Assembly (NCBI GenBank): GCA_037447605.1
Contig: CM074822.1
Coordinates: 1,883,492-1,947,491 of the forward strand
DNA: 64,000 nt
Origin: Zygnema circumcarinatum SAG 698-1b
Taxonomy: Eukaryota > Plantae > Zygnematophyceae
Reading direction: 5' to 3'
Part shown: in pieces, positions 4,961-39,731 of the stretch
Layout of the letters: the number at the start of each line of letters is the position of its first letter
Numbering within the stretch: position 1 is the first letter of the stretch
Notes under the pieces: model-generated
The model's database searches: none
Told to the model about the DNA's origin: nothing
The model's input: only the letters and a program-made list of their open reading frames with translations
Position numbers and translations under genes: made by a program

Positions 4961-4984
4961 CACGTGTACAAAAGTGTACACGTG
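4961..4984. promoter_or_regulatory. Inverted pair of G-boxes in the ARC6/GWT1 bidirectional promoter
   Basis: CACGTGTACA-AAAG-TGTACACGTG: perfect 10-bp arms, each containing CACGTG; the right box extends to CACGTGGC. A CCAAT lies at 4946-4950. It sits in the 534 bp between the two ATGs. Confidence 0.5.
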
Positions 4985-5080
4985 GCGAGTCGCCATTGAA
5001 GGTCGCTGTGAAGCGGACACTGGCGGAAGGAGCCGGGGAGGGCCGCGAGGGGCTAGCAGGCAGGCGGGCTCGCGCCTGCC

Positions 5081-12793: not shown

Positions 12794-12827
12794 ACGGAGC
12801 CGGCGGGTTGCCGCCGCCGATGCCCTT

Positions 12828-12835
12828 TTTCCCGC
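12828..12835 (+). promoter_or_regulatory. E2F-consensus site TTTCCCGC upstream of the EAR-motif orphan gene
   Basis: Exact match to TTTSSCGC about 240 bp before ATG 13075; a single short motif, so chance occurrence is possible. Confidence 0.25.
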
Positions 12836-13074
12836 GCCCAGCCCGCGCTGCCCGTTCTCTTGCCCGTGCCCCAAAACGTTTCCCGGGCAGGCTGCCCGCG
12901 GCCGCATTGAGTGCCCGGTCCCGGGCGCGGTGCCGCCCGCCAGCTGGCGCCGTCGCGTCCACATGGCGGCGCGGCGCGCACAAGGCAGGCAGCGCCCCGC
13001 GGCCGCCACCGGACGCCCTCCTCCCTCCCTCCCTCCCTCCCTCCCTCCCTCCCTCCNNNNNNNNNNCCCCCGCC

Positions 13075-14163
13075 ATGGCGGCCGCGCCCTCCGCGCCGCA
13101 CCTCGCGCGCTTCTTCCTCGGCAGGCCGCCCTTCTCCTCGGAGGACGCGCCGCGCGGGCCAGGGTTTGGGGCCGAGCGGCGGAGCTCTCCTCCGCCTCCG
13201 CCGGCGCTGCCCCTCTCGCGCATGCCCTCGCACGTGAGCAGCATCACCACTGACAGCAGCGCGGCCATCGCCGCCGGGGAGGGCGGCTGCAAGGCGGCGT
13301 CTCTCTGTTCGACGGAATTTAGCGACCAGAGCAGCTCCTCGCGCCCCTCCTTACCCTTCTCAGAGATGGAGGAGCAGTTCGGCCGCGGCCATGGCCATGA
13401 CCGGCACGACAGGCTGCGGCGAGAGGTTCAGAACGCGGCGGCCATGGCTGCAGAGAAGGGCGGGGCCTGGGCGCAGACTGAGCTGCATCTACGAGGTTCA
13501 CAAGCTGCCGCGTGGCACGCTGCTCGCTTTGCAGCGCAGCCAGGCGAATGCGCATCCGGAGGCTCGCCTTGCTCAACCACGTCATCGCTGACCGAGGGAT
13601 CCGAGCGGAGCAGCCATGGCGGCGTGAGGACGGAGGGTCTGCTCGGGGACAGGTCAAAGCAGGTAGCGGAGACAGGGAGCACCGCTGCAGGGGCCATGGC
13701 GGCTGCTGTGGCTTCGAGGAAGGCGCAGCGCGTGGGGGCGTACGGCCTCTCTTTGGAGAACATGGCGGGACTCCCCCCCGCTTGCTGCACGCGCATGTGC
13801 ACGTTCTTCTCCATGCCCTGCTCCAAGCGCCGCCGCAGGATGCCGCCCGGGGACGCGCCCCCTCCGCTCTCGCCGCCGCGCGACCGCCATGGCGACCACG
13901 GGGCGGCGGAGCGGGGGCAGTCGCCCGAAGAGGAGCGATGGGTCCTCGGCGGGAAGGAGGCGGAGGGAGGAGGGAGCCTGCTTCCGCTTGCAGCAGCAAG
14001 CCATGGCTCCCGCAGCAGCCATGGCGGCCACGGGGCGCTGGAAAGCCGGCCGGTCCCTCTGAAGAGGGTCGCAGATGCCGCGGACGGGTGGCGGCGCTGC
14101 CCGAGGGAGGACGCGGCGGCTGCAGCAGAAGGAGGAGACCTCGACCTCGACCTTAGGCTATGA
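13075..14163 (+). CDS. Intronless ~362-aa low-complexity protein with C-terminal EAR motif (DLDLDLRL); putative transcriptional repressor/TOPLESS adaptor
   Basis: Open frame from gccATGGCG (good Kozak context, preceded by the (TCCC)n tract seen before other genes here) to TGA 14163. It ends exactly in DLDLDLRL, and has internal TELHLRG and GLSL motifs, a Cys cluster CCTRMCTFFSMPC and basic KRRRR. No DNA-binding domain recognised. An N gap lies directly upstream. Confidence 0.7.
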   Translation: MAAAPSAPHLARFFLGRPPFSSEDAPRGPGFGAERRSSPPPPPALPLSRMPSHVSSITTDSSAAIAAGEGGCKAASLCSTEFSDQSSSSRPSLPFSEMEEQFGRGHGHDRHDRLRREVQNAAAMAAEKGGAWAQTELHLRGSQAAAWHAARFAAQPGECASGGSPCSTTSSLTEGSERSSHGGVRTEGLLGDRSKQVAETGSTAAGAMAAAVASRKAQRVGAYGLSLENMAGLPPACCTRMCTFFSMPCSKRRRRMPPGDAPPPLSPPRDRHGDHGAAERGQSPEEERWVLGGKEAEGGGSLLPLAAASHGSRSSHGGHGALESRPVPLKRVADAADGWRRCPREDAAAAAEGGDLDLDLRL

Positions 14164-17800: not shown

Positions 17801-18658
17801 CCCCGCCCAACACCATGTCTGCTTCCTGCACGAGGCGGAGGGGGGCGAAGGGGGAAGTGAGGGAGGTGGGAGGGGGTGAGGGAGATAGAGAGGCGGAATG
17901 GGTCGGAGATTGAATGGGGAAGGGAGGAGAGGGGCGACAGAGAGTGGGCGAAGGGGGGCAGGACGAGGAGGGCGCGAGGGAAGCAAGAGAGAAAAGAGGG
18001 AGCAAGACGAAAGTGGGAGAGAAAGAAAGAAGAGGAAGGGCGAGGTAAAGTAGAGCAAAGAGAAAGACGTAAAGAAACAACGAAGGGCTATTCTGCATTG
18101 TTGCTTGCAAAGCAAGCGAAGCTTGGAATTCAGAACTGACAAACAGGTTGAATACGACCTTAGCTGAATTTCGGATGAAAATCATCCAGTTACAAATTGA
18201 TGAGTTATTCATGCAATTTGCAGAAAACCTGTTGCGGAATGCCAATGAAAGGGCTATTCAACTTCTGTGCCAGAATCTGGTAATTGGACTATGTCTCTTT
18301 CGCTTTAGAAGCGAAAGTAAAAAAGCTGATGGTTTGGAATATAAGTGGTCGAGGAAAGTAAGCTTATTCTACTCTAACCGCACATAAACGAAAAGATAAT
18401 GCAAGGAGCACACGACAGGGCTCCAGGAGAAGAAAACTGAGAAGAAAGGAAACCACATGGAAACCGAGCGAGTGGGAGAAGTGAAAGGAGAGCGGGAAGG
18501 AAGACGAGGAGAAAGAGCAGAGGCGAAGGAACAAAAAAGATAGCCGCACTCCTGCCGGCCGGCCCCTCGCACCCCTGACTGACCTGCTCGATGTCCTCCA
18601 GCTTCTGCAGGTACTCGCCCGCAGTGACCACCTCGTCGGCAGCAAGAACCCCGTCCAT
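14876..18658 (-). CDS. UBR7: UBR7-type E3 ligase (UBR-box zinc finger + PHD)
   Basis: Exons 18658-18584, ~17827-17667, ~17205-16937, ~16376-15759, 15441-15230, 14968-14876. Motifs: EADMVLGGDDGDRCTYEQGYVARQAVFSCLTC; ELWTRRNFRCDCGNSKF; NVYNQNFKGEYCTCGRPYPD; MIQCCVCEDWFH; FLPKNWRSNLCTC; FLLNVEDTIRAYE; last exon VTGEAVRGFFADLKEKRRR*. Confidence 0.93.
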
Positions 18659-19971: not shown

Positions 19972-22900
19972 TCACGCCACCTTCTTTGTCCTTTTGCTCC
20001 GCTTGACTCTCTTCGCCGCGACCTTTGGTGTTGCCCCGTTTTCCACGCCAACCTGCACATTGCAGACAATCGGCTCAAACGACTGATACGTAGAACTGCG
20101 TGCACCCTCAAATAGCAAAACAAAGCGTAGATCCCCAAAGACATCGCGCCTCACCAATCTTCTCCTAAACAAGACCTGTTGCAGCAGCATACACTCTGTT
20201 CCCGCTGACTCCATAACTATGGCGTGAGTCAAGGAGTGAAGTCGTTGGCCCATCCTTGTCGTACCCGTGATGTGAGGACAACATCATATGGTACACACAA
20301 TTCTTCTCTCAAAGGAAGTCTCTCGGACACTACTTCGATGGACCAGCCATGAGTGGATTAAGCTTTGGACGAGCCTACACTCGTCCATCTGAAAGGTGAA
20401 CTGGGTTCTACAGATCTCAACAGTCCAAGTTCAGTCCAAACAAAGCGGGAAGACGGCCGCACCTTAGAGGGAGCAGACGATGGAACTTCGAGATCGTCAT
20501 CATCATCTTCGTCGTCGTCGTGGTTTCCCTCCTCCCCTGAGTGCTCCGCCTCCCCCTGCTGCAGCGCGAGCCTCCCTCTGTCCTCTTCTGCCTTCGCTGC
20601 GCCGACTTTAGCGGCCTCTTCTGCCGCTTGCCTTGCTGACGCTTTCTTTGCAGCTTCTGCCGCTTTCAGAGCTCTAAATCTGATGGGATCACAATAAAAA
20701 CCAATGCATTCCCATGAGCAGGAGAAAACCGGAAGTTGGCTACTATTCATAATCCTGAACCTGTTCAAAACAACGACCGGTACATTTCATGTACTCTTCC
20801 GGTGATGCCACACACCGAAAAATAAAGCCAAAGCCCTTTTCCACTACGAATATCTTTTAAGTTCCATGTTTGCCCCCTTTCAAGTATACGAATGGGCAGG
20901 GGTATTCCTCCGTCTTACAGAAAGAACGAATTATCTTTTTTTCTTTTTTTTTTTTGCGAGTTCTCGCAGGTCCTCCTTGCTCCTACCGCAGACGTTCCTC
21001 ACTCCGACGAAGTTAGCTCACCAAGACACTAATAAACGACATCAGACTCGCCGCTTCGCCACATTAGACGGCGCGTGAAACACAAGAAACACGTCGATCC
21101 CCCTAAAGCAGCTGAACGAGCTCTTGCATGAAAGGTAAATTTCGATTTCCCACCTTTCCCCTCTCGTCCGCTCCACTTCCTTCTCTTCGACTGTGGCAAT
21201 TGTCGCTGCGCCGGAACGCTTGGCCTGCCCTGCATCGATGATGCCGCTCCCATCTTTCCCGACGACCGGAGTGGCCCCGCCGTACTGCTTCAAATAGAGC
21301 TGCTGAGCTGTACTCAGCACATTGTTTGTCAACCTGCAGACACCCCCTCGCCACGTTGGAGTTAACAGGGTCTGCGACGAAATAGTGCTCCCAACATATG
21401 AGAACCCCCATTCTATGCTGCTTTGTTGTCTGCAAAGTCACTGAAGGACATGTAATGTGGGTGGTGGCCCCAAGGCAGTACACGAAACCTACATCTCCAC
21501 AGCCAAGCCAACCACTTCAAAGAAAAATAGCTATTCTAACTCGAGCAACAAGAATTCCACACTCTGGTTAGGCGGAAAGTGCAAACCACAGAAAGTTTAA
21601 CTTCTCTGAGATGCCTGATTAGAACAGAACAAAACAGATCAGCTTCGGCCCCATACCAGTAAAGTGACAAGCCCGATGGCACCGAAAGGGAGAAATAACC
21701 AATCATAAACGGAAGGAATTTCAATATAGCCTGTGTCTGTTTCTGTGCAGGGTCCTGCGTAGGTACATCCAACCATCCAAGAGAAGGTGTAATGTTTCAG
21801 CATATTGATAAGCATTCAAAAATGTAACGACTGACCTTTCGGAATCGAAGATATGGTAGAAAATAGAAGGACATGGATCTCAGATTTTCATGATTGAACC
21901 CATGCAATAATGCACATATCTCAGGATTGCCTGCGCTTGCATAGCGCCGCCAGAAGCCATTTCTGGTTTTATGATTAGATTTCCGCATCGAGAGCCCACA
22001 AGCGAATTACTACATGCTCAACATCCGGTACCGTTTGGTCCGTATCCTAGGGTTTGTTAACTGCATAAACCTGCAAAAGAGGCAGCTAGTCATGGGGCTT
22101 GCAATGTGTTTTCTTCACCAGAGAGAGCCCGCACTCACAGTGGTGGCCGGCTGCATGAGCTGCATTGAGAAAAACTGCGACGCCACGAGCATGACCGGCA
22201 GGACGAGGTATGCCGCCGTGGGTAGCCACCCGAGAGGAGGGGCACCGTCCTGCCATCCGCAGCATGCGGACCACCACCGACACATCAATGGCGAAGAGTG
22301 CTTCAAAGTAGCACATAAATATGTACATCACCTTCTGGGCAAGACGTATGACAGCCTGTTCCAACGCAAAATCTGAATGTCAAAACATCCGCTATTCCCC
22401 CAGCTCAAAGTTTCAACACAACCCCTGAATGGGGAATTATAATATCGGCGCAACACGGACCTGGACAGGTAGCAAAGCTTGGGCAATTCAAAATTGCTCT
22501 GGAGGAACGATAACATGCAATTGACCAAAACAGTTGCACCGTGCCAAAAGGTTCTTGAACAAGGGAGGTGCCACGTCCTGGCGAGTGTCTCTTAGCAGTG
22601 TGACAACAGAGGTTCCAACTTCGGCATAAAAATGGTTTCTGACTGTCTGGTCAGCGCAGAAGACCAAAACCTATCTTGTGTTCCTCCTTCAGCAGTGTCT
22701 GCTTTCAGCCCTTTACAACTTGGCTAGTTTCTTTCTGGCAAGAAGTTCAGATATTTTACCACAAATGGAAACAGCCATGTAAGGCCTGTCTGGCCGTTGG
22801 AAGGACCCGCCAATGAAGGAATCCAAAAAAACCCCTCCGTCAAGACACCCTGCAAGTAAAACGATTGTGTAGAGTACTTCATAATCTTGTATCAGACAAA

Positions 22901-25843
22901 TTTAATGCGACAAAGTAAGTAGTCAAGCGTAATCGACCACTAGTAGGCCAAGAAAAGCAAAGCGTAAAATCACTGCTTTCTTTTCGATGAAATCTCAGAA
23001 TGCGCTGCCCGGAATTCATGAACGGACCTCATTCGCAACATTGCTTAATGCGCGATACAGGCCAATCCAAACCGGAATGGTTGCCAAGGTAGGAAGGCAG
23101 CCTGAAAAAAAAATAAGTGAACATAAAATGTGCTTGAAAAAGGTGCAAAAAAAGGAAATCAGCAGCGTAAATCACTACGAAAGTTTCCTATCGGAAGCGT
23201 CTACCAAATAAGGGTGGCAATAGTGGCTGCGTCATGTTGCCGTGAGGAGCTGGGTCATGCATGCCACATGTGCTTCACCTGCAAAGTTCCATATGTCCCC
23301 AACTCAAGGCCGAAAATGACGTTTCTCACCTGCTAGAGGATTGACACCAGCTTGCTGATACAGTCTTGCAGTTTCCAGTTGTATCCGTTCCTGAGACCCC
23401 ACCGCAAAATTTGAACTTCAGCCAATACAAATGCTAACTTCACCTTGAAACCCCCTGACAGCTCCTTCCCCTCCACTTCTCACCGACCTAAAAAAATTCA
23501 AAAAAACCTTCATTCTATTCCCATTTCCATACCGTCACAGCCCAAAAAATGCAATTTCTCCAAACCAAGCTCCTACCTCCACACTTCCCCTACTGTCTCT
23601 TTGGTGCTCCTTCCCCATTTCTTCCCAATTCCTCCTCTCTCTCTCATCAATTTTCTCCCTTCTTACCTCCTCCCCTTTCAAACTACATTCATCATGACAA
23701 TTTCATCCTACCTAAGAATGCTTAAAATGCTATCACACTTATAAGTGCACTGGTCAACTACCTCTACCTTTATCAAGTTTATTGTCATGCGGTTCTGAGG
23801 ATTGAGAATATGCTCAATATTTCAGCAACCCCTACTCCCCTTCCCCCACCTCCCTTCTCACACTACCTCCAACCCATACCACCCCCCCCCCCCCCCGCCC
23901 ACAAGCTTCCTTCTGCATGTGCAGTCTGTTTCGCTTCCTGTTCTTCACTAGTTCTTTTCTTTCTCACGTTTAGATTCCACTGCCTACACCTTCCCTCCCG
24001 TCTACCCCACTATCTCCGTCCCCTTCTCTTTCTCCTCCTCAAGCACCTGTCTCCTTCACTTGTCCCTCACCTTTCTTCTTTCTCCTCCCTTCCTTCTTAC
24101 TTTCTCACTTTTTCCTTTCTCCATTTCCTTACTCCTTTTTCCGGCCCATGCCCTACCTTCAATTCTTCTCTCCAAACTTTACAATATTTCCTTCATCTTT
24201 TCCATTATCTCATTTTCCAATCCTTCTAGTCCCGTTCATAGTGTCTTTATGTACCAGGTGTTATTCTTCTTTTTTCCATGCTTCCTTCCTCCAATAGCTT
24301 CCAAGTTTATCTGGTTGCGAAGCCCATCCCAGTAGAAAATAAAATCCACACCTGGTCGCCCTGGTACTTTGTTTGAATAGCTTTGATTTTCGGTTGAAGG
24401 TTCTGCATAGCCATCGTAGATTCCACCTGGAACAGACGCCCTAGATTTACAGGTCAGCCCGGCGATGCCCCCAGCTTCAACTAGCAATCAGTTTGTTCCT
24501 TTCAACTTAACTCTGCGGTGTAACAAATGCTCCCGTAAAATATTTTTCTGAGAGTCCGAAAAAAATGGTTTTTATGAATTTTAAAGAGCGGATTATGCCA
24601 GTCTTATTAATTTTCAAACAATGAAATCTAGCGGCTCGCCATTATGCTGGCAGAGAAGGAGTAAAACTAGCGCCTTGAATAAGGAGAACGCCCTGAAACT
24701 AGCTACATCAGTTGAAGTTGGAAACACCTTCTGCTCCAGACTCGAGACGGATGGTCAGGCAGGGCAAACGAAGGGGGGAACCTAAACCTGCTGCTTCGTC
24801 AGCGGATATGTGGCGGCTTTGACGAGGAGCGTGAGGAGGATGATGGAGAAGCCGTAGGCGTAGGGCACGTGCACGTTAGCCAAGCCGTTCTCCAAAAGCT
24901 GAAGCCAAGCCGCCCGTCTCCCTCGTCAATCACACTTTGTGGAATCCAACAAGAAGCAGGGCAAGAACAAGAAGCAGTTGTGGTTGAGCAACAACACCTG
25001 TCAAGAAACACACTGACGTAAAGGACTCCGAGACCAAGACAAATTAACTAACTAGCGCGGTGCATTAGTTGCGAGCAAGATAATGCAATTGCGCATAAAT
25101 TTCTTCGCGGTTGCACTGTATGGCAGAGGAGAGGCACACAAGGAAGGGCCAGCTCCTCTTCAAAACAACAACCTGAAGGCACTGCGTAAGACGGAGTGGA
25201 ATGCGCTCAATACATGGAGCCCGTCCTATGCCTGCTTGCGACGCGGAGGGACTCGAGAAGTGAAGCGGACAAAGCTGGGCAAAGGCTTACATCCTCCGTG
25301 CGGGACGACCGCACGGGAACAAAAGGACAGGACACAACGGCATTCATGGCGTGCAAGCGTCGTAAAACCTACAACGTTCTCGCAAGCTGTTGACCACAGG
25401 GAGACTCTTGCCTTTAAGATAGATTCAAGCACGTCTGCAAGGCCTGTGAGCCAATCCTGCTGCTTGACAAAGGTGGAGGCAGTCTCGGCAGCCGTCGATG
25501 CTGCGTCCACTGCTGACGATGCAGCGTCGGCAGCGCTGGACGTGACAGCTTGAATCGCGACATCATTTGCCGCATCAGCGATGCTGTAGACGGCATTTTG
25601 GCCGAACGCGACGGCCTCCTTGGCAGTCTCAACAAGGGAAAACGCATCCAAGGAAGCCTTTGCGGCGAAGGCCTGTACTCGGCGCTCATGAATTTGCCAG
25701 CTGTGCGCTCCGCCTAGTGTTCTACCGCCAAGAGAGCTCCTGAGCCGTTCCTTCGCAGGTGGCGAGGCCCGGCCGTACGGCGCGGAGGGCGGGCAGAGCG
25801 CGCAGCAGGGCCGCGCGGCGGTGAGCAGCAGAGCGCCCTCCAT
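19972..25843 (-). CDS. ALB3: ALB3/YidC/Oxa1 thylakoid membrane insertase
   Basis: Exons approx. 25843-25412, 24898-24788, 24426-24352, 23391-23331, 23102-23027, 22852-22760, 22258-22138, 21769-21656, 21335-21151, 20682-20463, 20052-19972. Motifs: transit peptide; DWLTGLADVLESILK|LLENGLANVHVPYAYGFSIILLTLLVKAATYPLTKQQ|VESTMAMQNLQPKIKAIQ; ETARLYQQAGVNPLAG|CLPTLATIPVWIGLYRAL; EGFFWIPSLAGP; FLPFMIGYFSLSVPSGLSLYW; basic C-terminus KRSKRTKK. Confidence 0.95.
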
Positions 25844-26301
25844 GGCGCCCGCGGGGGAGGGAGGGAGGGAGGGAGGGAGGCAGGGAGGGAGGGGGGGGGG
25901 GGGNNNNNNNNNNGGGGGGGGGGGGAGGGCAGCGGAGGGCGGGCGGGCGGGGAGGGAGAGAGAGAGAAAGGGGGGAAGGGAGGGAGGGAGGGGAGGGCTC
26001 AGCCTCAGCGCCGCGCGCCGACGTGGCGCCCTCCCAGGCCGCCCCCGCATGGGCGGGCACTTTTCGCCCTCCTAGCACGCCACGATACAGCACGATAGGG
26101 TACGATATTTTATGATACACGATACGAAACAACCCATGAAGATATTCAGCGATACGAAATGACACGATGCGGTCGGTGTTCAGTGCGACACAAGACGACG
26201 CGGTGCTTTATGAAGAGTACGATACGATACGGGCCGCCTCATGGCACAACTAAAAGCATACCTCGATACCTTAATACCAAGTAATTTCAGAAGGGATGTG
26301 G

Positions 26302-26520
26302 CATTGATCTCGCGCATGGCGATGATGCCATCACATGGACATGGACAAAATCAGCACGGGGAACCACGAGAAACTGGTCGGCAAAGACCTACGGACAACA
26401 GAAACAAGCTAAGGAGCGCAAAGCTACGCCTAGGCTCAACACCGCCTCAAGCCCTCCCTCCCTCGAAGCCGCCGCGAAGGTCGCCGATCGATCGATGTGC
26501 GGCACATCGCAGTGATTTAT
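26302..26520 (+). repeat. Dispersed repeat family C, copy 2
   Basis: Closely matches the reverse complement of 62005-62197 (gaaccacgagaaactggtcggcaaagacctacggacaacagaaacaagcta...cgatcgatgtgcgg); preceded by CGATA-rich repeats at ~26080-26230. Confidence 0.8.
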
Positions 26521-27062
26521 CGTATTACAAATTCTAAGTATCGCACACCAACCCCTGCCTTCTGTCTTCCCACACTGCCCCCCCCGGCTACCCTTGATGG
26601 CCCTCACGACGAGCCCTCACACGATCAGACGGCTGCAATGGCCGTAGCTGCACTTTTTGTAACAGTGATCGCCAACGTTTTGTACGAGCATATCATGCCT
26701 GATAGTCCCCAATTCTCCCTTACATACATATTCAAGGGACGGCCAAGCATATACTTATATGATCTAAGGAACTTCGTACACGGAAATTTGTAAATGCGAT
26801 GGGCTATATATGTCGCATGTCTCTGGATTTAAGGGAATCCATAGACGGGTCCTTTATGTCCCACAAAAATTATTGACCGTCTGCGCCTGCGCCTTGGTTG
26901 GCTTTAGTCACCGCCTCGTGCAATGGTTAGCCACGAAGCTTCGTAGTCGAGGCAAATACCCTGAAAACCCTGCGGGAGGTTGACGGGGCGTTCTACAGCG
27001 TAGAGCGGCATGGGGCCGTACAAGCGGCATGATGGCAAGGGTTGTGTGGGTGTTGCGGCGTT

Positions 27063-27157
27063 GGGCCTGCAGGGTTTTCGGGACGGGCAGCCCCGGGCCT
27101 GCAGGGTTTTCGGGACGGGCAGCCCCGGGCCTGCAGGGTTTTCGGGACGGGCAGCCC
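27063..27157. repeat. 3 x 32-bp tandem minisatellite
   Basis: Unit gggcctgcagggttttcgggacgggcagcccc starts at 27063, 27095 and 27127. Confidence 0.95.
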
Positions 27158-27379
27158 TCGCCCAGCGCGCGGGGAGAAGGGGAGGGAGGGAGGGAGGGAG
27201 GGAGGGAGGGAGGGAGGGAGGGAGGGACGGAGGGAAGGAGGGAAGGAGGGAAGGAGGGGGCCCGCGAGCTGCAGGGCGCTGCGCTTGAGAGGGGGGATAG
27301 GCCGACTGTGGGGGAGGGAGGGAGGGAGGGAGGGAGGGAGGGACGACGGGAGGGCGGGCAGGTGCAAGCTGTGCTTTAA

Positions 27380-30300
27380 ATGAAGGGGGCGCCTGGCGGG
27401 TCGTGGCGAGACTTCGGGCAGATTGCGGGCGGCAGTGCTCTGCGCTCGGCAGCGTGGGCTCGTCTCGTGGAGGCGCCGCTTACAGGCGCGCCCCTGGGAG
27501 TGTGCAGGGCGGCTGGTATCGCCTCCTCCGTCGATATGTTTCTTAACGCGCTCGCAGCCAAATCCTCTGCCAACTGCGGCGCCTCTCTCGACGGCCCCTT
27601 TGGACAGCGGAAAATTCTTGACGGCGGGAATGCTGCCGCCTCCAGCTATGGAGGAGCCGACTGCTATCGGAGGGCTGCCCTAGACTTCGTCACGGAACTA
27701 GCAGGCCCGCGCGCGGTGCCTCCCTCGACGGAAAAAGTGCACTGCCCGGACTCGTTCGTTTGCGCTGAGGAGCTGCCCGTCCCAATGTTCGCTGTGGACA
27801 GGCGCGCCTCTTCACCCCTCTTCTCTCTATTGTGCCGCTCCAGGCTCATCCTAACGATAGCTTACTGTCTGTCTTTGAGGGTGGTGAAATTGGGGCACGT
27901 TTCCGTCGCTCGCGCGTGCGTTTCTTCATTTGTACAGAGTTGGAAAATGCTTTGTGTGTAAACTGGTTCTCTATTCTTTGGAACGGAACTATGTCGCCGC
28001 AAATAAATGCAACAGCGGCCAAGGGTCTTGCCGTCGAACTGTGGTTACCGTGTCTGAATTGGTCTACATGCTGCTTGAATGTGCCAATGACCTTCCGTGC
28101 TTTCAAGAATTAACTTTCTGCAATGCGGCCTTCTCCAGAGATATGCACTGCACGGTGTGGAATCGGCGGCTATCGGAGCTCAGCGGGTGGACTGAAGGGG
28201 AAGTGATGGTCACTCAAAAATTCGTCGCGTGCACTTTTTCTCCTGACAGCGGCAGCCGCTCGCAGAAGTAAGTGCCCTTCTGTGTTACGCCATGCATGCG
28301 TGCACTCGTTCTCTGCCCGGCAGACCTTGCCGCCCTGCTGTGGCGGCCCACTCACAGTTGCCTGCTTCGAAAACAAAAGTGGCATTCTGTAGGGTTCACA
28401 GTATCACGACTGCCGTTTAACTTAACTTCCGCCAAGATATCAACGAGTCTTGATGGCTTCATTTTGAAGCCGCTCATGGCATACTCCCATGGTGCTCTGA
28501 GGAAACTTCCATTCTCTCAAATCTCCCCAAGACACGTTCGCATGTGAGAGCAATCGAGATGAGTAGCTTCGCGTGACTGGCTGAGTGACTGCTTGATTGC
28601 ATTTGACTGCACGTATGCAGGTCTTGTGAGGACGAGCTGCGTGCCGCCATGTTCGGGCGGGCGGTCGCGGGGGGCGAGTTTGTGCTGCGGACGAAGGGCG
28701 GCCGCGCAGTGCGCGTGCTGCTCTGCGCGAGCCGCCGTACGGACGCACTCGGAGCTGTTAGTGGAGTGCTGTGCGCCGTGCTCAAGCAGAGTGACATCTT
28801 TGGAGGCTCAGAATCGGCCACGGTTTTGCCAAGGGAACAACAGGAGATGTCAGAAGGTGTGTTGACACATCCTAGTTGTATCTTTCGAGTCAGGGAGAAT
28901 AGGCGGACAAAGAGCGCATGAGAGTTTGACCACTTTTGGTTCTGTCTGTGGTTATTTCGTGTACTGTTGTTGAATGAACAACTAGTGAACGGTCGGGACT
29001 GACTACGGCTGCGTCCATGCATTCGTTGCAAGTCGTTGGTGTAGTGCGTAGGCTCTGTTGAGCGAGTATGCAACCATGGACGATGTGTTGCGGCAGCCGG
29101 TGGTTGATTCTCAGTGGCTGGAAGAGGTAGAGCTGGAGTGTTTGTTGGTCTGCTCGTGATGCACATTGAAGGTGCTCTGCCCTGACCACTTGAGGAAACC
29201 ACGTTTGATTTTGAATGCCTTCTTTATGGTCGTTGGATAAGACTGGACGCGTCTACTCGTTGACATACTATTCTCTAGCAATGGCAGAAGCTTCACGCTG
29301 TGGTTCTTCCCTAGTTATACAAAGGAGTTCGAGGGGCTGTTTCGACGGTAATGGCAGGGTGGTGTTCTGAATTGTAGTCAAGTGCAGACGGTTTCACTCT
29401 CTGACTGACTGACTGACTGACTGACTGACTGAGTGGGGCGTGGCGGACTTGGCTAACAGAGGCGAGCAACACTGGCGACGTGGCAGCAGCTGAGTTCCGC
29501 ACTCCCAGCCCCCCTTCGCCGGTCCTGCTGCCGTCGCAGGTCCTGACCGGCTTCTCCCTCGAGGACCCATCGCCATTCGGTCAGTGCCCTCTTCACATGT
29601 CACGTACTGTGCTGTGCTGCTTCGCTCAGGGGAGGACAGGCGGCGCATGGTCCCCTCCCTCTTCTGGGAGAGACACTTGTTGCCCCTGCTGCTTGGTCGC
29701 GGCTTCTTCTTCTTCTTCTTCTTCTTCTTCTTCTTCTTCTTCTTCTTCTTCTTCTTCTTNNNNNNNNNNNNNNNNNNNNNNNNNNNNNNNNNNNNNNNNN
29801 NNNNNNNNNNNNNNNNNNNNNNNNNNNNNNNNNNNNNNNNNNNNNNNNNNNNNNNNNNNGGGCCACAAAGAGGCCACAAAGAGGCCACAAGAGGCCTGAG
29901 GCCACAAAGAGGCCACAAAGGAGCCACAAGAGCCTGGGCCTGAGGCCTGAAGGCCACAAGAGGCCTGAGAGGCCACCAAGAGGCCTGAGGCCGCAAAGAG
30001 GTCACAAGAGGCCACAAGGGCCATAAGGCCATAAGAGGCCACCAAGGCCACAAGGGCCATAAAGGGCCATAAAGGGGCCACAAGAGGCCTGAGGCCTAAA
30101 AAGGCCCATAAGGCCTGAGGCTCTGAAGACCTAGAGGCCTGGGCCACAAAGACCCTGGGAGCCCTGAGGCCACAAGAGGCCCTGAGGGTTGTGTGAGCAA
30201 GTTGACTGTGAAACCAACGCCTCGTGCCTGCGTGTCACCGTGCCTGCGTGCCTGCGTGGCTGGTGGCTGGTGGCTCGTGCCTCGTCGTTGGTGCCTTGTG

Positions 30301-32014
30301 GTTGGTGGCTCATGCCTCGTGCTTCGTGGATATGGCTCGTGCCTCGTGCCTCATGCCTTGTGCCTCGTGCCTCGTGCCTCGTGGCTCGTGGCTATGGCTC
30401 ATGGCTCATGGCTCGTGGCTCGTGGCTCGTGCCTTGTGCCTCGTGTCTTGTGCCTCGTGCCTCGTGGCTGGTGGCTGGTGGCTGGTGGCTCATGCCTCGT
30501 GTCTCGTGGCTATGGCTCGTGCCTATGGCTCTTGGCTCGTGCCTCGTGTCTCGTGCCTCGTGCCTCGTGGCTGGTGGCTGGTGGCTGGTGGCTCGTGCCT
30601 CGTCGTTGGTGCCTTGTGGTTGGTGGCTCGTGCCTCGTGCCTCGTGGATATGGCTCGTGCTTATGTCTCGTGGCTCGTGCCTCGTGCCTCGTGCCTCGTT
30701 CCTCGTGCCTCGTGCCTCGTGCCTTGTGCTGTGCCTGCACCGTGCCTGCGTGGCTCGTGGCTATAGCTCATGGCTCATAGCTCATGGCTGCGTGGCTTCC
30801 GTGGCCCCGCCAGCTGCGTGGCTTTCGTGCCTGCGTGCCTCATGCCTGTGGCTCGTGAAAACAGTGGCTGCGTGGCTGCGTGGCTCGTGGCTCGTGGCTC
30901 GTGGCTCGTGGCTCGTGGCTCGTGGCTCGTGGCTCGTGGCTCGTGGCTCGTGCCTCGTGGCTCATGGCTCATGGCTCGTGGCTCGTGGCTCGTGCCTCGT
31001 GCCTCGTGCCTCGTGCCTCGTTCCTCATGCCTCGTGCCTCGTGCCTTGTGCCTCGTGCCTCGTGCCTCGTGGCTCGTGGCTATGGCTCATGGCTCATGGC
31101 TGCGTGGCCTGCGTGGCTGCGTGGCCTGGCTGCGTGGCTCGTGCCTGCGTGCCTCATTAATAAATGGCGCTCGTGGCGTGGCTGCGTGGCTGCGTGGCCT
31201 GTGCGTGGCTCGTGGCTCGTGGCTCGTGGCTCATGGCTCATGGCTCATGGCTCGTTATTAATGACGAAGTAGACGTGTATTTAGCAATTCTGTTGTGGGT
31301 GTCACAACTAAAAACGGTCCAAAACTGCATTGGAAGATCGGGACTGAAAAGTAAAACTAGTTTTGAGCTGGGCACATATAGTAGCGTGTTTCAGGAAAAT
31401 GTCGGTCGAAAAAAAATAAAAGACAAGATAGTTAGAAATAACGAAGTAGACATGTATTTAGTAATCCTTTTGTGGTTGTCTCAACTATAAACGGCCCAAA
31501 CCTGCATTGGATGATCGGGACTGAAAAATAAAACTAGTTTTAAATAGGGCACATAACGTAGCGTATTTCAGGAAAATATCGCTCGAAAAAGAAAATGACA
31601 AAAACGGAATAAATGACAAAGTAAGCGTGTATTTAGCAGTCCTGTTAGTCTTGTTGTCCTGGTTGCGCAGGAGTAATTCCCTCACAACTGGTGTGTGAGG
31701 TGGTTCAACCGGTCGACAGTCGATACCGTTGAGTGTGCTCGATTTCACAGGCTGTATCGAATAGGCCGCTTGTTGGACAAGGCTTCGCCCGCACATCACC
31801 GCCAGCAGATCACTCACTCCATACATTATTATGTGCATCGCAGCCCCTCGACATTAACCCGCGTATGTATGCTGATGGCCTCCAGCTCGCCGCGGTTTCT
31901 AGTGTTCAGACCAGTGCAGTTTACCGCTATAATCAGGGAGCATGCAATGCAGAGGCCACAGCCGGTGAACACTCTCCATGCACACAAGCGACAAAAGCAC
32001 CAGCCACAAACTGA
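27380..32014 (+). CDS. Spliced stand-alone PAS-domain protein (phytochrome/PAS-repeat-type fold); 3' exons tentative
   Basis: Exons 27380-27801 (GC donor), 28139-28267 and 28621-28856 join in phase to give EELPVPMFAVDR|DMHCTVWNRRLSELSGWTEGEVMVTQKFVACTFSPDSGSRSQK|SCEDELRAAMFGRAVAGGEFVLRTKGGRAVRVLLCASRRTDALGAVSGVLCAV, a complete PAS+PAC pattern. Further phase-compatible exons 29460-29579, 31671-31690 and 31751-32014 give 1191 nt (396 aa). Alternatively exon 3 reads to the stop at 28921 (283 aa). A (GGGA)n tract precedes the ATG as in other genes here. Confidence 0.68.
29703..30185. repeat. (TTC)n microsatellite, 100-N gap, then GGCCACAA(A)GA/GGCCTGA degenerate tandem repeat
   Basis: Direct reading; (TTC)n at 29703-29759, gap 29760-29859. 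Confidence 0.93.
30220..31255. repeat. ~1-kb degenerate heptamer array (GTGGCTC/GTGCCTC)n
   Basis: Direct reading; contains internally duplicated blocks (for example ~30270-30345 recurring at ~30580-30660). Confidence 0.95.
31260..31650. repeat. Diverged AT-rich tandem repeat, ~176-bp period, ~2.2 copies
   Basis: Units start at 31260 (aatgacgaagtagacgtgtatttagc), 31437 (aataacgaagtagacatgtatttagt) and 31612 (aatgacaaagtaagcgtgtatttagc); units 1 and 2 share ctgcattgga.gatcgggactgaaaa.taaaactagtttt. Confidence 0.88.
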
Positions 32015-32418
32015 TACTAAAAAGAAGCACTGTTCTGACCAGTACGAAAAGGCGCAAGCCATAAAAGATGCTTAGAAGATAACGAAACACACGTTTATCC
32101 TTGCTTCATATCATCATCCTACCGCCGTACGAAGTTAAAAAGCAAGCTCTGTCGAAGCCGACGGTCGAAGGCCACAACATGCAGGCACGACACAGGCCGA
32201 CTGTCCTTACCAATTCCTGTTTGAAGTTCACAGTATGCGCTGTGGCGAGTTGTGAATGACGGGGTGGTTCTAGTCCATGTCACAGATAGCAGTGCCCGTA
32301 TGCCACACGCTATACCTACAGGGGGACATATAGATTCAATCTTGTGCTCACACTCCCAAGGCTACATCTCAAACGCAGTTCAGTCCCCCACACGACCCTT
32401 CGCTGGGAGATTCCCCGT

Positions 32419-35400
32419 CTATGAGATGCCGGCAGGTGCCTCGATGGCTGTTGATGTGTTCGTCCCTGTTTTGCCGTTCAAAACAGTCACATTTCCCTCT
32501 GAATCGACATCGATGATGGCTGAATCGCCCTCCTTGATCTCCCCCGAGAGCATGCGCTCAGCCATGCTGCAGCCGGCCGTGCCCACAGAACAGTCAGTAA
32601 TCGCGGCCAACAGAGCATGTACCATCATCCCGGAGCAGCAGCCGCACAACATTACACCATAAAAACAAAGTCCAAAACCAGACGTGCCCGAATCATAGCT
32701 GAAAAACTGCAACACCCTCGTTCAAACTTAATCTCTACAAAATTGCTCTCTTGTGGGTGAGGGCTTTCGGAGGACAGCCAGCCACCTGTCCTCGAGGAGT
32801 CGCATGATGGCCCGTCGGAGGGGCCGCGCTCCATAGCTCGGACTGTAGCCCTCATCCACCACGCGCTCCCTGAAGCGCTCCGTCACCTGCAGAACGATAG
32901 CCGAGGACACCTCCGAACATCAGCCGGAGACTAAAGTGACCCAGTGGCTTGTGGATCAGCCTTTCAAAATACGTTATGCTCAGAGTTTGATAAGCAATGA
33001 CGGCATCCCAAAACGGCTGAGTCTAGTTTGAATGGAGGCAGGACTCACCTGCAAATCAATATCTTTCTTCGCCAACCTCTCAAAGATTTCCTTCAACATG
33101 ATATCCGCAATCTCCTTCACTTCTGACTTTGTCAACTGCCTGAACACGATGATCTCATCTAGCCTGTTCAAGAACTCGGGTCTGAAGTACTGCTTCAACT
33201 CCTCATTCACCAACGTCTTGATACGGTTGTAGCTGCTGTCCTTCTCGCCATAATCAAGCTGCAAAATGGACCACGAATCCCATCACGCAGAGCAAGGTCT
33301 ACAATGCAACCATTGAGCAGGCCTTCACCATTCACAATATTCATTATGTCTCTCAAGCACATCCATCCCTGCGCCCCTACACGCACTCAGGACTTGAGGG
33401 GACACTTCAGCAATACATATGCTTCCACTCACCTGGAATCCGATGCCACCTCCGCCCTTTTCAATGACCGATGAGCCGACGTTGGAAGTCATGATGAGGA
33501 GAGTGTTCTTAAAGTCGACAGTGCGCCCTTTGCTGTCAGTCAATCGCCCATCTTCCAAGATCTGTTGCCACCAGCATGTCCATCGGGACCACCATCAATG
33601 GTCATGGCCTGATACCCGCATACTGTTATTGGAATTGCATTGCCGATTCCAGAGTCGTCAAAGTCTAAAGTGGTTGAAATAACCAACTATAACTGGAGCC
33701 ACGCTGAATGGGAAACCCTATAGAACTTCCAAACATATAAAATGATTCCCAAAAAAAAACAAGCTGAAAACTCTCATACAAGTCTCTCACTGGCCGCTTT
33801 TCCGTAACAAAGTGCACACACAGAAAGGTAAGGACCATGGCCACCCCTCTTTTTTCCTGATCGAGGTAAGAAACTTTCCCAAGGATTGAATTAAAGACAC
33901 AGAAATACTGGACTGCAATAAAAACAACACTCCACTACAAAAACCCACTTGCAAGAGCGCCATAGCCCTGCTTTTCAGTATGTTATGAGAACACAGAGCT
34001 AACATCTGCTTATCAGAACTAAACCGCTGAACTCCTTTACCCGAGAATAGCAGGACTAGCCAGCCACACGTGAAGTCTCACCTGAAGCATCATGTTGAAA
34101 ACATCGGGATGCGCCTTCTCAATCTCGTCAAACAAAACAACGGTGTAGGGCCTCCTGCGGACCGCCTCCGTCAGCTGCCCGCCCTCGCTGTAGCCGACAT
34201 AGCCTGGAGGTGAACCAATCAGCTTCGACACTGTGTGTCGTTCCATGAACTCGCTCATATCCAATCGCACCATAGCCTGCTCGAAAAAAGAGTCACCTTT
34301 GAGCATAAATACAAAGCAATCCACTGTGCTTAATTAAGCAGTATAGATGCAGGGTTGATGGCATCGTTTAGGTTTAGAAGATGGATAAGAGTAATGATAC
34401 AACCAAAACAGATACAATGCATGAACAGCCCACGCTTACCTCCTCTGAACCAAAGTAGTATGATGCCAAAGCTTTGGCCAACTCTGACTTGCCCACGCCC
34501 GTGGGTCCGGAGAAAATAAAGCTTGCAATTGGTCTGTTCGGGTTCTTCAGTCCAACTCGAGCACGTCGAATGGCACGGCTGCGAGTAAAGACAAACAAAT
34601 AATACCCACCAAGCTCTCTAGATCAGAGCTGACCAACAAAAGAAGCATTCAAGGGCCACTTCACCACTTGGCTAAAACAAGGTGTTGAGCCCTCCACCCT
34701 AGTATTTCGGAGTGGACGACCATGCCGTTGCAGATTGAATAGCCGTTGGCATAGGATTCAATTGTACCTGATAGCCTTGACTGCCTCGTCCTGTCCAATG
34801 ACGCGCTGGTGAAGGGTCTCCTCCATCTTAAGCAGGCGGTCGCTCTCATCCGTGGACACCTTCTCCACGGGAATGCCGGTCCACGCGGACACGATCTGCT
34901 GAATGTCCGCCTCCGTCACCATGGGGCCCTCCTCGCGAGCCTCGTTCTCCGCCTTGGACTTCTCCTTGCCCTTCTCCGTCACCGACGCGATCTGAGCCTT
35001 CAGCTCCATCTCACGGTCGCGGAGCTCTCCAGCCTGCAACGATTCATTCCAAAAGCGTATCAAAGTCCTGCAATTCTTTGTTCCATTTGAGTGGGGAAGG
35101 CTGCCTTTTCATGCACCGTCGTTTATGGCAGAATGCTCAAAATATGCAACAAAAGTACAACACCAAGTAGTCCGCGGATGACGAGCTCATTTAGCTCACA
35201 GAAACTGTCACACTGAAGCTGTGACATTGAAGGAAAGTCGGGCTAAAAAATCCCATCCGCGATTATCAAGTGCGAAGTAGCAAAATGCGAAGAAGTCCCT
35301 CACACACACCTTCTCAAAGTCCTGACTGCGAACTGCTTCGTTCTTTTCCTTAGTGATAGCACGCAGCTGCTTATCGAGCTCCCGAGCCTCCTCCGGCACC

Positions 35401-38400
35401 TGAAATTGGATCATTGTGGTTAATTCATTGTTCCTGTCAAAAGAGCTGCAGACCGAAAAACTGCTGGATACTATACATTGCATATTCAGCTTATATATAT
35501 GAGTTTATTTGGACAATCTCAGACATGCACTATCCCTGTATCCCTGTTTGGCTTATGGCCCCCCTCCAATTCATTCCCTTTCCAGACAAAGGCCCATCCA
35601 TATAATTGATGTGGCGGGAGTTGTATCGCACTCTGGCATCGGCCAGAAAAAGTGTTCAGCACTACACATAGATAGCTGGAAAACACGCATCACCTACCCT
35701 ACAATCGACGGTTCAAATTCAACTGAAGCAGTAACGAAATGAATTTCGTGTCAGAAAAAAAAGCAGCCGGCACCACGATCTTCATTCCTCTCGCGCTCAG
35801 ACCATCCTGAACGAGACGAGACACGTGGCAAGCCCGCCTCACCTGCGCGTGACGAAGGCGAACGCGAGAACCGGCCTCGTCGATGAGATCAATAGCTTTG
35901 TCGGGTAAAAAGCGGTCACTGCATGAACACAGATTAAGCGTAGCCTTAGTCTGTGTGAAAATGAAAGAGACGAGAGGTGAATTCAGATCGACAAGCCAGA
36001 TGGAATAGCACAAGCTAACAGTCCAGAAAAGTTCACAAGCCCCCACCTGATGTATTGGTAGGAGAGCTGGGAAGCAGCCACCAGTGACTCATCGGTATAA
36101 CGCAGCTTGTGGTGAATCTCATAGCGCTCACGCAGCCCCTTGAGGATGAGAATGGTCTCCTCAACCGTCGGCTCCGGCACCTGCCGCAATGAACAGCAGC
36201 TTACACATAAGGATGTTTCTTGGCATCATAACCTGCATCCAGCAATCAGCACTTCTTGCAGGCCCTGTTCATTCCCACTTGCTGGACAACATCCAGGCAT
36301 GTCCAACCTAAAGACTTTGCACTCAAATTGACAAATACGACAATCCAGTAAAAGCTTCAGCAAAAGAACTAGACATCCTTGTAAGCAAATCTGCCAGAAT
36401 CGAGCTCCATTGTTCGAGCCTCACAACAAGCAGACGTTTATCTAACTAAACATCAGCAGAAGGTCACAACTAACTAAACACTTGTCAGACAGCTGACCAA
36501 GAGAAGTTCTCGACTTCCGCGACCACAATAAAAGAAACTTTCAGGCAGATACCTGCACAGGCTGGAAGCGGCGCTCAAGAGCAGGGTCTTTCTCGATATG
36601 CTTGCGATACTCGTCCAGCGTTGTAGCACCGATGCACTGCGTAATCAATTGCCATCCCAGTGTCCGTTAGAAGAAATTCAAACAAGCAGTCTTATAGACG
36701 GACATCAACTTCACAGAATATCAACAACGTAAGAACGAACTTCCTTAAAAAGAAAACGAATGCCAAAAAAGTACCCAGAGTGCATATACTACATGAGGAC
36801 ATCCATAACATCAACATTCTAGACGAACCACAATCCTGAAATCCTTAAAAACCCACATACAGCATGTCCTTGCATAGCTCTCCACATACAGAGAACAACA
36901 ACTGCATACAGAGCATGTGGCCCCGCATGTATAAAGCGTATGCGTAGTGGGTTAACAGTACTTTTCTAAACACTACTTCGAATAATCATCCATCATGCCG
37001 TCCCCATCCGGTCAGACGTCAACTGCAAAGACCACGCAATTCAACCCGACAGCCTAAGCTACGATTGCGGAGTAAGTGATGAAGTTCAATACATACCTGC
37101 AGTTCTCCACGAGCCAAAGCTGGCTTAAGAATATTCGCAGCATCAATAGCGCCCTCGGCAGCTCCCGCCCCGATAAGAGTATGGACCTCATCAATGACAA
37201 GGATGATGTCATCAGCCTGCTTAATCTCCTCCATCAACTTCTTCAATCTCTCTTCAAATTCTCCTCGGTACTTAGTACCGGCGACAAGCAACCCCATGTC
37301 TAGCGTAATAACCTGCGCCATCGTAAGCAGTGATATGAGCGTGCTGCCCTCAAAACTCACATCAGAAACACGCAATCGAAATCAAACGAGTTGAGAACTG
37401 GAAAGCATACAAAAAGCAGACACCTCACCTTCTTGCCTTCGATCGTCTCCGGGACATCGCCGCTGGCAATGCGCTGAGCCAGCCCCTCGGCAATTGCCGT
37501 TTTGCCCACTCCGGGCTCACCGATGAGGCAAGGGTTGTTCTTCGTGCGGCGACCAAGAATCTGAGTCACGCGCTCAATTTGAGCTTGCCTGCCAACAACG
37601 GGATCCAACTTTCCCTGCAAACAAAACCCACCATGAGTGCAACAGGTAAAATCTAGCAATTCGCTATTTTAGTGAAAATTTAGGCACATCGCAAAATCTC
37701 CAAAGAGAATACGTTTATGTGATTAGAAAGACGAAGGCAGCACAATAATAGTGTCTGTGTAAAGCAAGATAAGCAGTGCCTCTCTGAAAGCGGATATTTC
37801 TGTTCATCCGCAATCTATCCATACACTAAGAACCTACCCTTAACAAAAACAGATCAAAGCCAGTTCACCCCTATCGATAAAAGTAAAGTTGGTATGCTTA
37901 TGAGAACATTTCACGTATCCCATTACAATAGGGTTCAGAAGTGTCATGCTCACATCTTCTGCAAGCTTTGTGAGATTAGTTCCATATTCCTCCAAAGTTG
38001 GCATTTTATTGCTGCTGCTCCCTCCACCGACACCAGCACCAACAGCCTCCGTGCTCTCCCCAACCATTCGGATAACCTGAACATTATAAAGACCCAATTA
38101 AAAAGCAACCAATGAGACCTAAAATCTCTGAGGACACGACACGGAGGTGGGGATATACGGCCTCCGTAAACCTATATCATTCTACTTTCTAAAATGACAT
38201 CCGCTAACGGTAACGGCGTTTCGTGATACCATGTCGTCGGGCTCCATTTTCTAAATGACAAAAACAATCCTGCTTCAGAGAATAACTAACCAATGCAGAC
38301 ATGACTGATTATGAGTCCTTCCACACCTGAGTACGAATATTCGTCGGATCAGCACCAAGGTTTTCCAGAACCCTTGCCGCAACCCCCTCTCCCTCGCGCA

Positions 38401-39731
38401 ACAAACCCAGCAAGAGGTGTTCGGTACCAATGTAGTTATGACCTACAGGACAATACGAAAACGCAAAAGAAGGCTTTATTAGAATACACTCCATCCCAGC
38501 CAGTCAGTCTGCTCCTCAACGCAGGCTGTGTCACTGTTGACCCACAGAGACTATTTTCTTTTCATTAGTAAGTGAAAGCCAGCAGTGGTGTACCGAGCTG
38601 ACGAGCTTCCTCCAAAGATAACTCCAACACGCGCTTTGCCCTAGGAGTGAATGGGATCTCCACCGCCACAAACCCTGAACCCCGTCCAATGATCTTCTCT
38701 ACTTCCACACGAGCTTCCTTCAAATTCACTCCCATGGATTTGAGAACTTTGGCCGCAATTCCAGTGCCTTCCCCAATGAGTCCCAGAAGGATCTGCTCCG
38801 TCCCTACAAAGTTGTGACCAAGTCGGCGAGCTTCTTCTTGGGCAAGCATAATCACTTTGATGGCCTGCATACCGTGTACTTCCAGAAGAGTGTAAGTAGG
38901 AGAACAACCAGCAGATGGAACAGCTTGACAATTATAAAAAAAAGCCGGAATCTCGCGCTGTCAGTAAAACCAACATTCACTTGTGATACAAAATTGCAAC
39001 CCGAGAGACATGCCAACTTAGCAAGACGAAAAGGAAAGATTAACATCATCGTCTAATGATATTTTCAATTGAAGGTGAGGATAAATTGCTCAAACTAAAC
39101 AGCCCAGTGAATGTACAATTCCAAATTAACGGCAACAAGTGACTGCAGATCGAGTACAGCGGATGCAACTGCGAACCACGTACATACATTCGGCAATGTC
39201 AAAATTGGAAAACTACCTCACGGATCCATACTGACCGAGAGAATATCTACAATTGCCCTTCGCAAATAGATTCAGAAGGAAAGCGTTCAGCAGCAGAGAT
39301 CATGGATTCCTCATGCGGCATTACCTTTACCTGACTAATCACTTCAAGACTGCAGAAATAGGGTAAACGACCCATCATCGTCAGTGAATTGGGTGTTCAT
39401 TTCCTGTTCAGCAGTAGTGGCACGAGAGCAGTACCTTTTCTGTGAAGCGCTCGAACATCGCAGTGGTGACCCCTCTCCTCTGGCCATGGCTGCGAGGGAC
39501 GGCGCTCACAGCGGCTGCGACAGTCGACTGGAGACTCCTCGCAGGGCGGGACCCGGCCGCGTCAACTGCAGCGGTGCGGCGCAGGCCCGAGAACCCCGCA
39601 CTGCAGCTCGGGAAGGAGCTTCTCGCAGCAGCGGCCCTGCGAGCCTTGCGGCAGCCGCGCGGCTGAACGCTGTTCACAAGGCCAACTGTGATTCCCTGGA
39701 GAGCAACCGACTGGGCCAGAATTCCCGCCAT
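32419..39731 (-). CDS. clpC: Chloroplast Clp protease ATP-binding chaperone ClpC (Hsp93/Hsp100)
   Basis: About 17 exons. Transit peptide then [10 protein letters not shown]|[29 protein letters not shown]; [15 protein letters not shown]; [36 protein letters not shown]; [33 protein letters not shown]; [21 protein letters not shown]; [15 protein letters not shown]; [26 protein letters not shown]; [12 protein letters not shown]; [11 protein letters not shown] probable 5'-UTR intron lies at ~39768-40203. Confidence 0.97.

Follow-up and report, generated by a model that had tools for sequence, protein, structure and literature searches.

The gene structure of a green algal locus

The stretch of DNA analysed here, referred to as the window, comprises 64,000 nucleotides (nt) of contig CM074822.1 of Zygnema circumcarinatum SAG 698-1b (assembly GCA_037447605.1, positions 1,883,492 to 1,947,491 of the forward strand), and coordinates are given relative to its first letter. 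At 27380-29579 on the forward strand lie the first four exons of an expressed gene for a protein with one PAS domain, and shortly downstream the assembly is interrupted by a run of 100 N (29760-29859). The first three exons match a family of streptophyte-algal proteins in which the PAS domain is followed by a receiver-like domain and a conserved C-terminal tail, and the locus is probably the 5′ half of a gene of that family.

The structure of the gene is defined by transcript contigs from four public sequencing runs (X1-X4, from three studies) that were aligned to window positions 27370-29700. Exon 1 (27380-27801) is coding from its ATG and ends in phase 2; the N-terminus that it encodes is variable and is followed by the family motif RRAALDFVTELAGP and by ELPVPMFAVD, the first strand of the PAS domain. 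Intron 1 (27802-28138; 337 nt, GC..AG) separates it from exon 2 (28139-28267), which encodes the N-terminal part of the PAS domain (DMHCTVWNRRLSELSGWTEGEV...). Intron 2 (28268-28620; 353 nt, GT..AG) is followed by exon 3 (28621-28856), encoding the C-terminal half of the PAS domain (EFVLRTKGGRAVRVLLCASRRTDALGAVSGVLCAV) and the start of a linker, and intron 3 (28857-29459; 603 nt, GT..AG) by exon 4 (29460-29579), a Ser/Pro-rich continuation of the linker (…EFRTPSPPSPVLLPSQVLTGFSLEDPSPF) that ends in phase 1 and aligns with the TP-rich linker of related proteins. All three joints are present in contigs of all four runs, and the third intron and fourth exon are seen in the same contigs that carry exons 1-3. 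The first joint was printed by the alignment as 27798^28136 and slides by 3 bases to 27801^28139, and the third was printed as 28854^29458 and is cut 2 bases further on. The exon phases are compatible across the joints, and the reading frame is open through the four exons. A GT donor at 29580 directly follows exon 4, showing that the gene continues; the intron 4 sequence that it opens (29580-29759) runs into a (CTT)19 repeat and then into the gap.

Three of the runs (X2-X4) contain spliced contigs at high depth alongside intron-bearing contigs at low depth. This mixture looks like the picture expected of RNA with some pre-mRNA, and the intron-bearing pieces are read as pre-mRNA on the ground that the three introns are similarly represented. 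At the 5′-end of the gene an in-frame TAA (27377-27379) lies immediately upstream of the ATG at 27380. The closest relative found, P0064, aligns with the window protein (which begins MKGAPGGSWRDFG...) from its first methionine, an alignment that fixes the start codon. Contigs of X3 (486 nt) and X4 (445 nt) extend past 27370, in the case of X3 by ~54 nt, and place the 5′ untranslated leader at 27316-27379 as a minimum extent; the X1 contig begins at 27379.

An earlier note, made from the sequence letters alone, had proposed a hidden spliced gene with joints at 27801^28139 and 28267^28621 and a GC donor at intron 1. Both joints are borne out by the contigs of all four runs, the pieces translate as the note had written them, and the transcript joint confirms the GC..AG intron. 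The end of the gene has to be moved, since the fourth exon and the further donor at 29580 show that it continues beyond the point at which it was first read to stop. The description of the introns as repeat-filled did not hold either: introns 1 and 2 contain no tandem repeats, and the repeats of this region are found upstream of the ATG, in intron 3, and around the gap.

Transcripts extend beyond the assembled DNA

All four runs leave the window DNA at 29579, 180 bases before the N run, and do so with an identical continuation of 30 nt. The contigs of X3 (1678 nt) and X4 (1623 nt) reach ~1,270-1,290 nt past exon 4, and that of X1 (1329 nt) reaches 421 nt. Neither the 30-nt continuation nor two sub-patterns of it were found in the 64-kb window with up to three mismatches allowed; the next exon is thus absent from the window, and for the PAS gene the DNA on one side of the gap does not carry on from that on the other. 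At least ~1.3 kb of the mature RNA is encoded in DNA that is missing from the assembly.

Read in the phase of exon 4, the continuation translates as E-SKEVFARSL, corresponding to ESKDVFQRSV at residues 338-347 of P0064, and four of the codons differ between the two at synonymous sites only. The matched stretch of P0064 belongs to the linker between its PAS and receiver domains, and is followed by another 195 residues and a 3′ untranslated region (UTR) of 1,144 nt. The ~1,290 nt of extra RNA fit what P0064 has beyond this point, namely 590 nt of coding sequence and the 1,144-nt 3′ UTR.

Searches for the remainder of the gene in the assembled DNA were negative. A receiver profile run against the six-frame pieces of 26000-32500 on both strands gave a best E value of 0.4, and a search of the whole window gave no receiver match at E 1e-3. 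Matches in a tblastn search of nine relatives against the whole window were confined to exons 1-3, and the interval 29860-32014 (satellite and unique sequence) contained no match to the family profile. The organism's own protein was not found in the two protein collections searched.

The break in the assembly at 29760-29859 can be attributed to its repetitive flanks, a (CTT)19 run to the left and, to the right, satellite DNA made of 11-mer and 7-mer units over 1.4 kb. The gene is bounded by an ALB3-like gene upstream and a ClpC-like gene downstream, and unless the scaffold is misjoined the gap is therefore the sole room for the missing exons. We infer that the 100-N gap is the site of these exons, which would supply the 3′ UTR and encode the remaining linker, a receiver-like domain and the conserved tail. 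That this gene has receiver and tail exons at all is judged probable because of the long transcript continuation, the match of that continuation to the P0064 linker, and the presence of a receiver in every full-length relative.

A conserved family of PAS and receiver-like proteins

Relatives were sought with the window exons taken one by one, and P0064 and other relatives stood in for the joined protein in Pfam searches and structure prediction. With exon 3 (78 aa) as the query, phmmer found 63 matches, mostly to proteins with many PAS repeats, which Pfam identified as multi-PAS hybrid histidine kinases. Three proteins of ~490-530 aa with a single match each (P0035, P0024, and P0021) had the appearance of orthologues. 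A word search started from one of these, P0035 of Coleochaete scutata, added P0064-P0069, giving seven full-length members from three algal classes (P0064, P0065, P0066, P0069, P0035, P0067, and P0068). P0065 is a Klebsormidium nitens protein with the automatic name 'CheY-homologous receiver domain and PAS domain-containing protein', P0067 and P0068 are gene models of Spirogloea muscicola, and P0064, P0066, and P0069 are derived from Logan/JGI transcripts.

A profile of the seven proteins matches the frames of exons 1, 2, and 3 in order, at profile positions 3-89 (E 2.9e-22), 65-130 (E 1.1e-16), and 131-188 (E 1.9e-20), respectively, and ordered matches at these E values are far beyond chance. 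All 11 columns of the PAS region that are invariant in the family (E-P-F, WN, GW, G, A, and G..C) are retained in the window, and exon 1 carries the N-terminal motif RAALDFVxELAGP in the form RRAALDFVTELAGP ahead of a single PAS domain, as the family does. Identity to the closest relative P0064 is only ~42-59% per exon. The family match, the retention of the invariant positions, and expression together indicate that the gene is a conserved member of the family and no relic.

Members of the family share a common order, in which a variable, disordered N-terminus is followed by the RAALDFVxELAGP helix, one PAS domain, a disordered Ser/Thr-Pro-rich linker of ~100 residues, a receiver-like domain, and a tail. 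The C-terminal half, of ~180 residues, is well conserved, with 38 invariant columns among the seven members, and the closing peptide SLPRALSGxFHNPLNLSR is nearly invariant, being present in six of the seven relatives and divergent in P0069. Compared with the Klebsormidium P0065-type proteins, the window gene has the same N-terminal motif, a single PAS domain with all of the invariant residues, and the TP-rich linker; its receiver and tail exons would lie outside the assembled DNA, and the comparison covers the front half.

The family is conserved from Klebsormidium to the Zygnematophyceae, and no land-plant member was found among the matches listed. A profile word search for further members, in land plants as well, was capped at 8,000 candidates and lost even some known members; it added bacterial hybrid kinases only. 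A word search with the exon 1 frame (193 aa, region 1-140) found no match within a length window of 106-338 aa, which excludes the relatives of 425-542 aa. In the literature no functional study of this architecture was found, and the work that was found concerns PAS histidine kinases (PMC6137987, PMC13730384), of which PHK1 and PHK2 occur in mosses and Klebsormidium (PMC6137987). The family is thus annotated, by an automatic name, and unstudied, and the window gene is a newly recognised member of it.

Two Closterium proteins, P0024 (Closterium sp. NIES-65) and P0021 (NIES-53), match the family over the front half only, through the PAS domain, and their C-terminal halves become Gly/Ala-rich and unalignable with the receiver. 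The divergence has the look of a gene-model error in frame or splicing, or else of a real loss. A genomic copy of a divergent member is present at positions 4698-7743 of a 147-kb eukaryotic contig of JGI metagenome 3300047994 (contig L006), where the second PAS exon is duplicated in tandem (5183-5278 and 5494-5604) and only weak receiver-like matches follow downstream, at 7595-7743, within ~1.5 kb after PAS exon 3. Prokaryote-style gene calls from this contig (P0053, P0056, and P0062; 134-216 aa) are fragments of the same gene. Its first intron is placed elsewhere than that of the window gene, and intron positions give no added support for the relationship.

The PAS domain and its affinities

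That the locus encodes a PAS domain, as the earlier note had claimed, is upheld by the ordered alignment of exons 1-3 with the PAS section of the family profile and by the relatives, of which four pass the Pfam model PF00989 (cutoff 22.6 bits) with scores of 26.8 (P0064), 34.5 (P0035), 36.4 (P0066), and 42.0 (P0069). PAS domains of the PF00989 type also occur in phytochrome C-termini and in multi-PAS histidine kinases. In the AlphaFold model of P0064 the PAS domain is a confident region (residues 150-262; predicted local distance difference test (pLDDT) 71-87) whose top Foldseek matches are phyB (7rzw) and phyA (8isk). The predicted fold, a five-stranded antiparallel sheet with flanking helices, should apply to the window protein by homology with P0064.

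Among proteins of solved structure, the PAS-A domain and the PAS-B domain of plant phytochromes A and B are the best, and almost the only, relatives of this PAS domain by both sequence and fold, and plant phytochromes are the only solved structures that its sequence matches with confidence. The PAS domain of P0064 matches phyB 800-909 (E 1.6e-6), window exon 3 alone matches phyA 838-872 (E 0.003), and window exon 2 alone weakly matches phyB 810-829, in order with exon 3. The pattern FAVD...WN...L(T/S)GW...G.C is common to the C-terminal PAS domains of phyA and phyB and to this family, with an identity of ~20-23%. Phytochromes have a pair of PAS domains, whereas members of this family have a single one and lack the PAS-GAF-PHY module, the bilin cysteine, and the kinase-like domain. 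Searches of the window exons and of the family members gave no match to GAF or PHY, and neither the window nor any relative contains remnants of HisKA, HATPase, or protein-kinase domains. Neither the translation of exons 2 and 3 nor the consensus of the family contains the flavin-binding cysteine motif of LOV domains (GxNCRFLQ). The absence of GAF, LOV, and kinase signatures recorded in the earlier note is upheld, and the relatives lack them as well.

Outside the family, the nearest PAS relatives are multi-PAS hybrid histidine kinases with five to ten PAS repeats, HisKA, HATPase, and receiver domains, and in some cases HPt, among them the oomycete and environmental proteins P0003-P0017. Against the PAS domain of the family, single repeats of these kinases reach 24-34 bits and the best single phyB PAS 18 bits, and by these scores the domain has no closer relationship to phytochromes than it has to the PAS repeats of kinases. 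The label 'phytochrome-type' given in the earlier note describes a real resemblance and is right in a loose sense only.

An atypical receiver in the relatives

The second confident domain of the P0064 model (residues 365-510) has the receivers of ETR1, Sln1, and CKI1 as Foldseek matches, and the model is disordered outside this region and the PAS domain, including at the N-terminus. A profile of the C-terminal halves of the family matches receivers of plant and fungal hybrid kinases, namely those of AHK4 (E 1.8e-10) and CKI1 (E 1e-9), and also those of ETR1 and Sln1. Although the fold is that of a receiver, the canonical residue set of CheY-like receivers is not present in the relatives. A glutamate of the family aligns on the phospho-accepting aspartate of AHK4 (Glu in six of seven members, Ser in P0069), the strand-5 lysine is replaced by R, Q, or C, and of the acidic residues after strand 1 only the first is invariant; the strand-4 threonine is kept in six of seven members. 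The domain is classed as an atypical receiver of the hybrid-histidine-kinase type, and from these substitutions it is predicted to be unable to take phosphate on an aspartate. In contrast to the multi-PAS hybrid kinases, no family member has HisKA or HATPase domains, and the family receiver is without the phospho-accepting Asp.

In the PRR/TOC1 proteins of the plant clock, a glutamate replaces the phospho-accepting aspartate of the receiver; these proteins act without phosphotransfer and have a C-terminal CCT domain. The glutamate at the phospho-acceptor position is a feature that the family receiver appears to have in common with them. The family differs in having a PAS domain on the N-terminal side, a different conserved C-terminal peptide, and a receiver that is nearest to those of hybrid kinases, and no CCT match was found by Pfam in any relative.

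A proposed role in binding

The family has no catalytic domain, and its receiver would not be phosphorylated on an aspartate; the protein would therefore most probably act by binding. The PAS domain could sense for, or form dimers with, a partner that itself carries a PAS domain (a phytochrome or PAS histidine kinase, for instance), or could be a module for a small ligand, while the Glu-type pseudo-receiver and the invariant tail could dock on a phosphorelay or other partner. The conserved NRWDLAGMD sequence after strand 4 corresponds to the usual output face of receivers and would be a candidate surface for such docking. The protein would in this case serve His-Asp or light signalling as an adaptor or as a decoy, its logic resembling that of the Glu-type pseudo-receivers of the clock PRRs. 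The combination of a kinase-type PAS domain and a hybrid-kinase-type receiver suggests, as far as sequence affinities go, that the family may have arisen from a PAS hybrid kinase through loss of the kinase core.

A more elaborate and rather doubtful version of this proposal is that the protein is a signalling adaptor that only streptophyte algae possess, land plants having lost it; its PAS domain would pair with the C-termini of phytochromes or PAS histidine kinases, and its pseudo-receiver and tail would engage components of a phosphorelay or the clock, the PRR-like receiver being of independent origin, from a hybrid kinase without its former kinase core.

The family joins a phytochrome-like PAS domain, a receiver predicted to be non-phosphorylatable, and a near-invariant C-terminal peptide, and it offers a modest, concrete candidate for the wiring of light or PAS sensing to two-component signalling in the algal kin of land plants. 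At this locus an expressed signalling gene is split by an assembly gap, and its missing 3′ half should be recoverable from transcript data. Annotation from this assembly would give nothing, or a false PAS-only protein; the first proposal, a surprising PAS sensor standing alone, is not borne out.

Alternative explanations

The preferred reading, to which a probability of about 0.8 is given, is that 27380-29579 on the forward strand is the 5′ half of an expressed gene of the streptophyte-algal PAS and pseudo-receiver family, with a proposed binding role, that is cut by the gap. Several points weigh against it. The four runs are recorded as RNA by guess only, and the sequence known of the missing part of the gene amounts to 30 nt. 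None of the window exons has a Pfam match by itself, even at E 10; the pieces (42-140 aa, against an intron-split model of 113 positions) are too short for this null result to count as evidence against a PAS domain. The Pfam Response_reg model stays below its cutoff in every relative (14.7-26.5 versus 30.2 bits), so that the receiver assignment is made from the profile search and the structural model. That model was built from a 7-sequence alignment, has a mean pLDDT of 54, and is silent on contacts between domains. The binding or decoy mechanism is purely inferred.

The earlier note had described a stand-alone PAS protein with no effector domain, and a product of this kind would arise if the missing exons added a short tail and a 3′ UTR, or if a form that retains intron 3 were used; the latter would stop at 28919-28921 after ...EMSEGVLTHPSCIFRVRENRRTKSA. 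The assembled DNA is indeed without receiver sequence, low-depth contigs of X2-X4 do retain intron 3, and the next exon is known for 10 codons only. The high-depth contigs of all four runs nevertheless carry the spliced form, and the intron-bearing pieces look like pre-mRNA. The known codons keep the frame open and match the P0064 linker upstream of its receiver, the receiver and tail, with their 38 invariant columns, persist in every one of the seven full-length relatives across three classes of algae, and the length of the extra RNA suits coding sequence plus a 3′ UTR of the P0064 kind. The note itself had named, as the outcome that would count against it, a larger multidomain protein with its other exons lost at the gap, and the transcript continuation (~420-1,290 bases past exon 4), together with the receiver of all full-length relatives, is judged to be that outcome. 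A PAS-only product is accordingly considered improbable. It is also unlikely, if a somewhat more open matter, that the scaffold is misjoined at the gap or that intron 4 is very long, so that the remainder of the gene would be located on a different scaffold or outside the window. In favour of such an arrangement, the length of the gap is only a convention, simple repeats lie on both sides of it, and the next exon is absent from all 64 kb; against it, the known introns of this gene measure 337-603 nt, and the weak receiver-like matches on metagenome contig L006 lie within ~1.5 kb after PAS exon 3. This arrangement would alter the location of the missing exons only, and not the identity of the gene. 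The resemblance of the PAS domain to those of phytochromes, and the failure of any lone exon to pass Pfam, might be taken to indicate that a phytochrome or PAS kinase is degenerating here, as a fragment or a pseudogene, and that the PAS-like pieces are its relics. This is scarcely credible for a gene that is spliced and expressed in three studies, has a frame open through four exons, keeps 11 of 11 family-invariant PAS positions, is conserved with P0064 from Met1 onwards, and is accompanied by no GAF, PHY, or kinase remnants. The pseudogene and phytochrome-fragment readings were rejected on the grounds of expression, the open frame, and the conserved PAS positions.

Repeats and neighbouring genes

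GGGA microsatellites and a 32-bp repeat in three copies lie upstream of the PAS gene (27063-27358), and a (CTGA)8 run is found inside intron 3 (29401-29432). Directly to the right of the gap are ~1.8 kb of satellite DNA (29861-31646), consisting, in order, of degenerate GGCCACAAAGA units, ~142 copies of the 7-mer CGTGGCT (30255-31255), and 2.2 copies of a 177-bp unit.

The right-hand bound of the PAS gene is a multi-exon gene for a ClpC/ClpB-type chaperone on the reverse strand (32419-39731), pieces of whose open reading frames (ORFs) resemble chloroplast ClpC in their N-terminal sequence (MFERFTEKV...), AAA+ motifs, and C-terminal sequence. On the left the gene is bounded by an ALB3/YidC-type membrane insertase gene with several exons, also on the reverse strand (~20300-26050; …LKFLPFMIGYFSLSVPSGLSLYW…), the first exon of which (near 25226-26050) contains a 10-N gap at 25904-25913. 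Further upstream, ORF pieces of a UBR7-like PHD/zinc-finger protein (…CDCGNSKF…YNQNFKGEYCTCGRPYPD…) occur on the reverse strand at 15755-18245. The interval 12001-14000, which is interrupted by a 10-N gap at 13057-13066, has a G+C content of 72%, compared with ~50% elsewhere, and both of its strands carry long ORFs that overlap.

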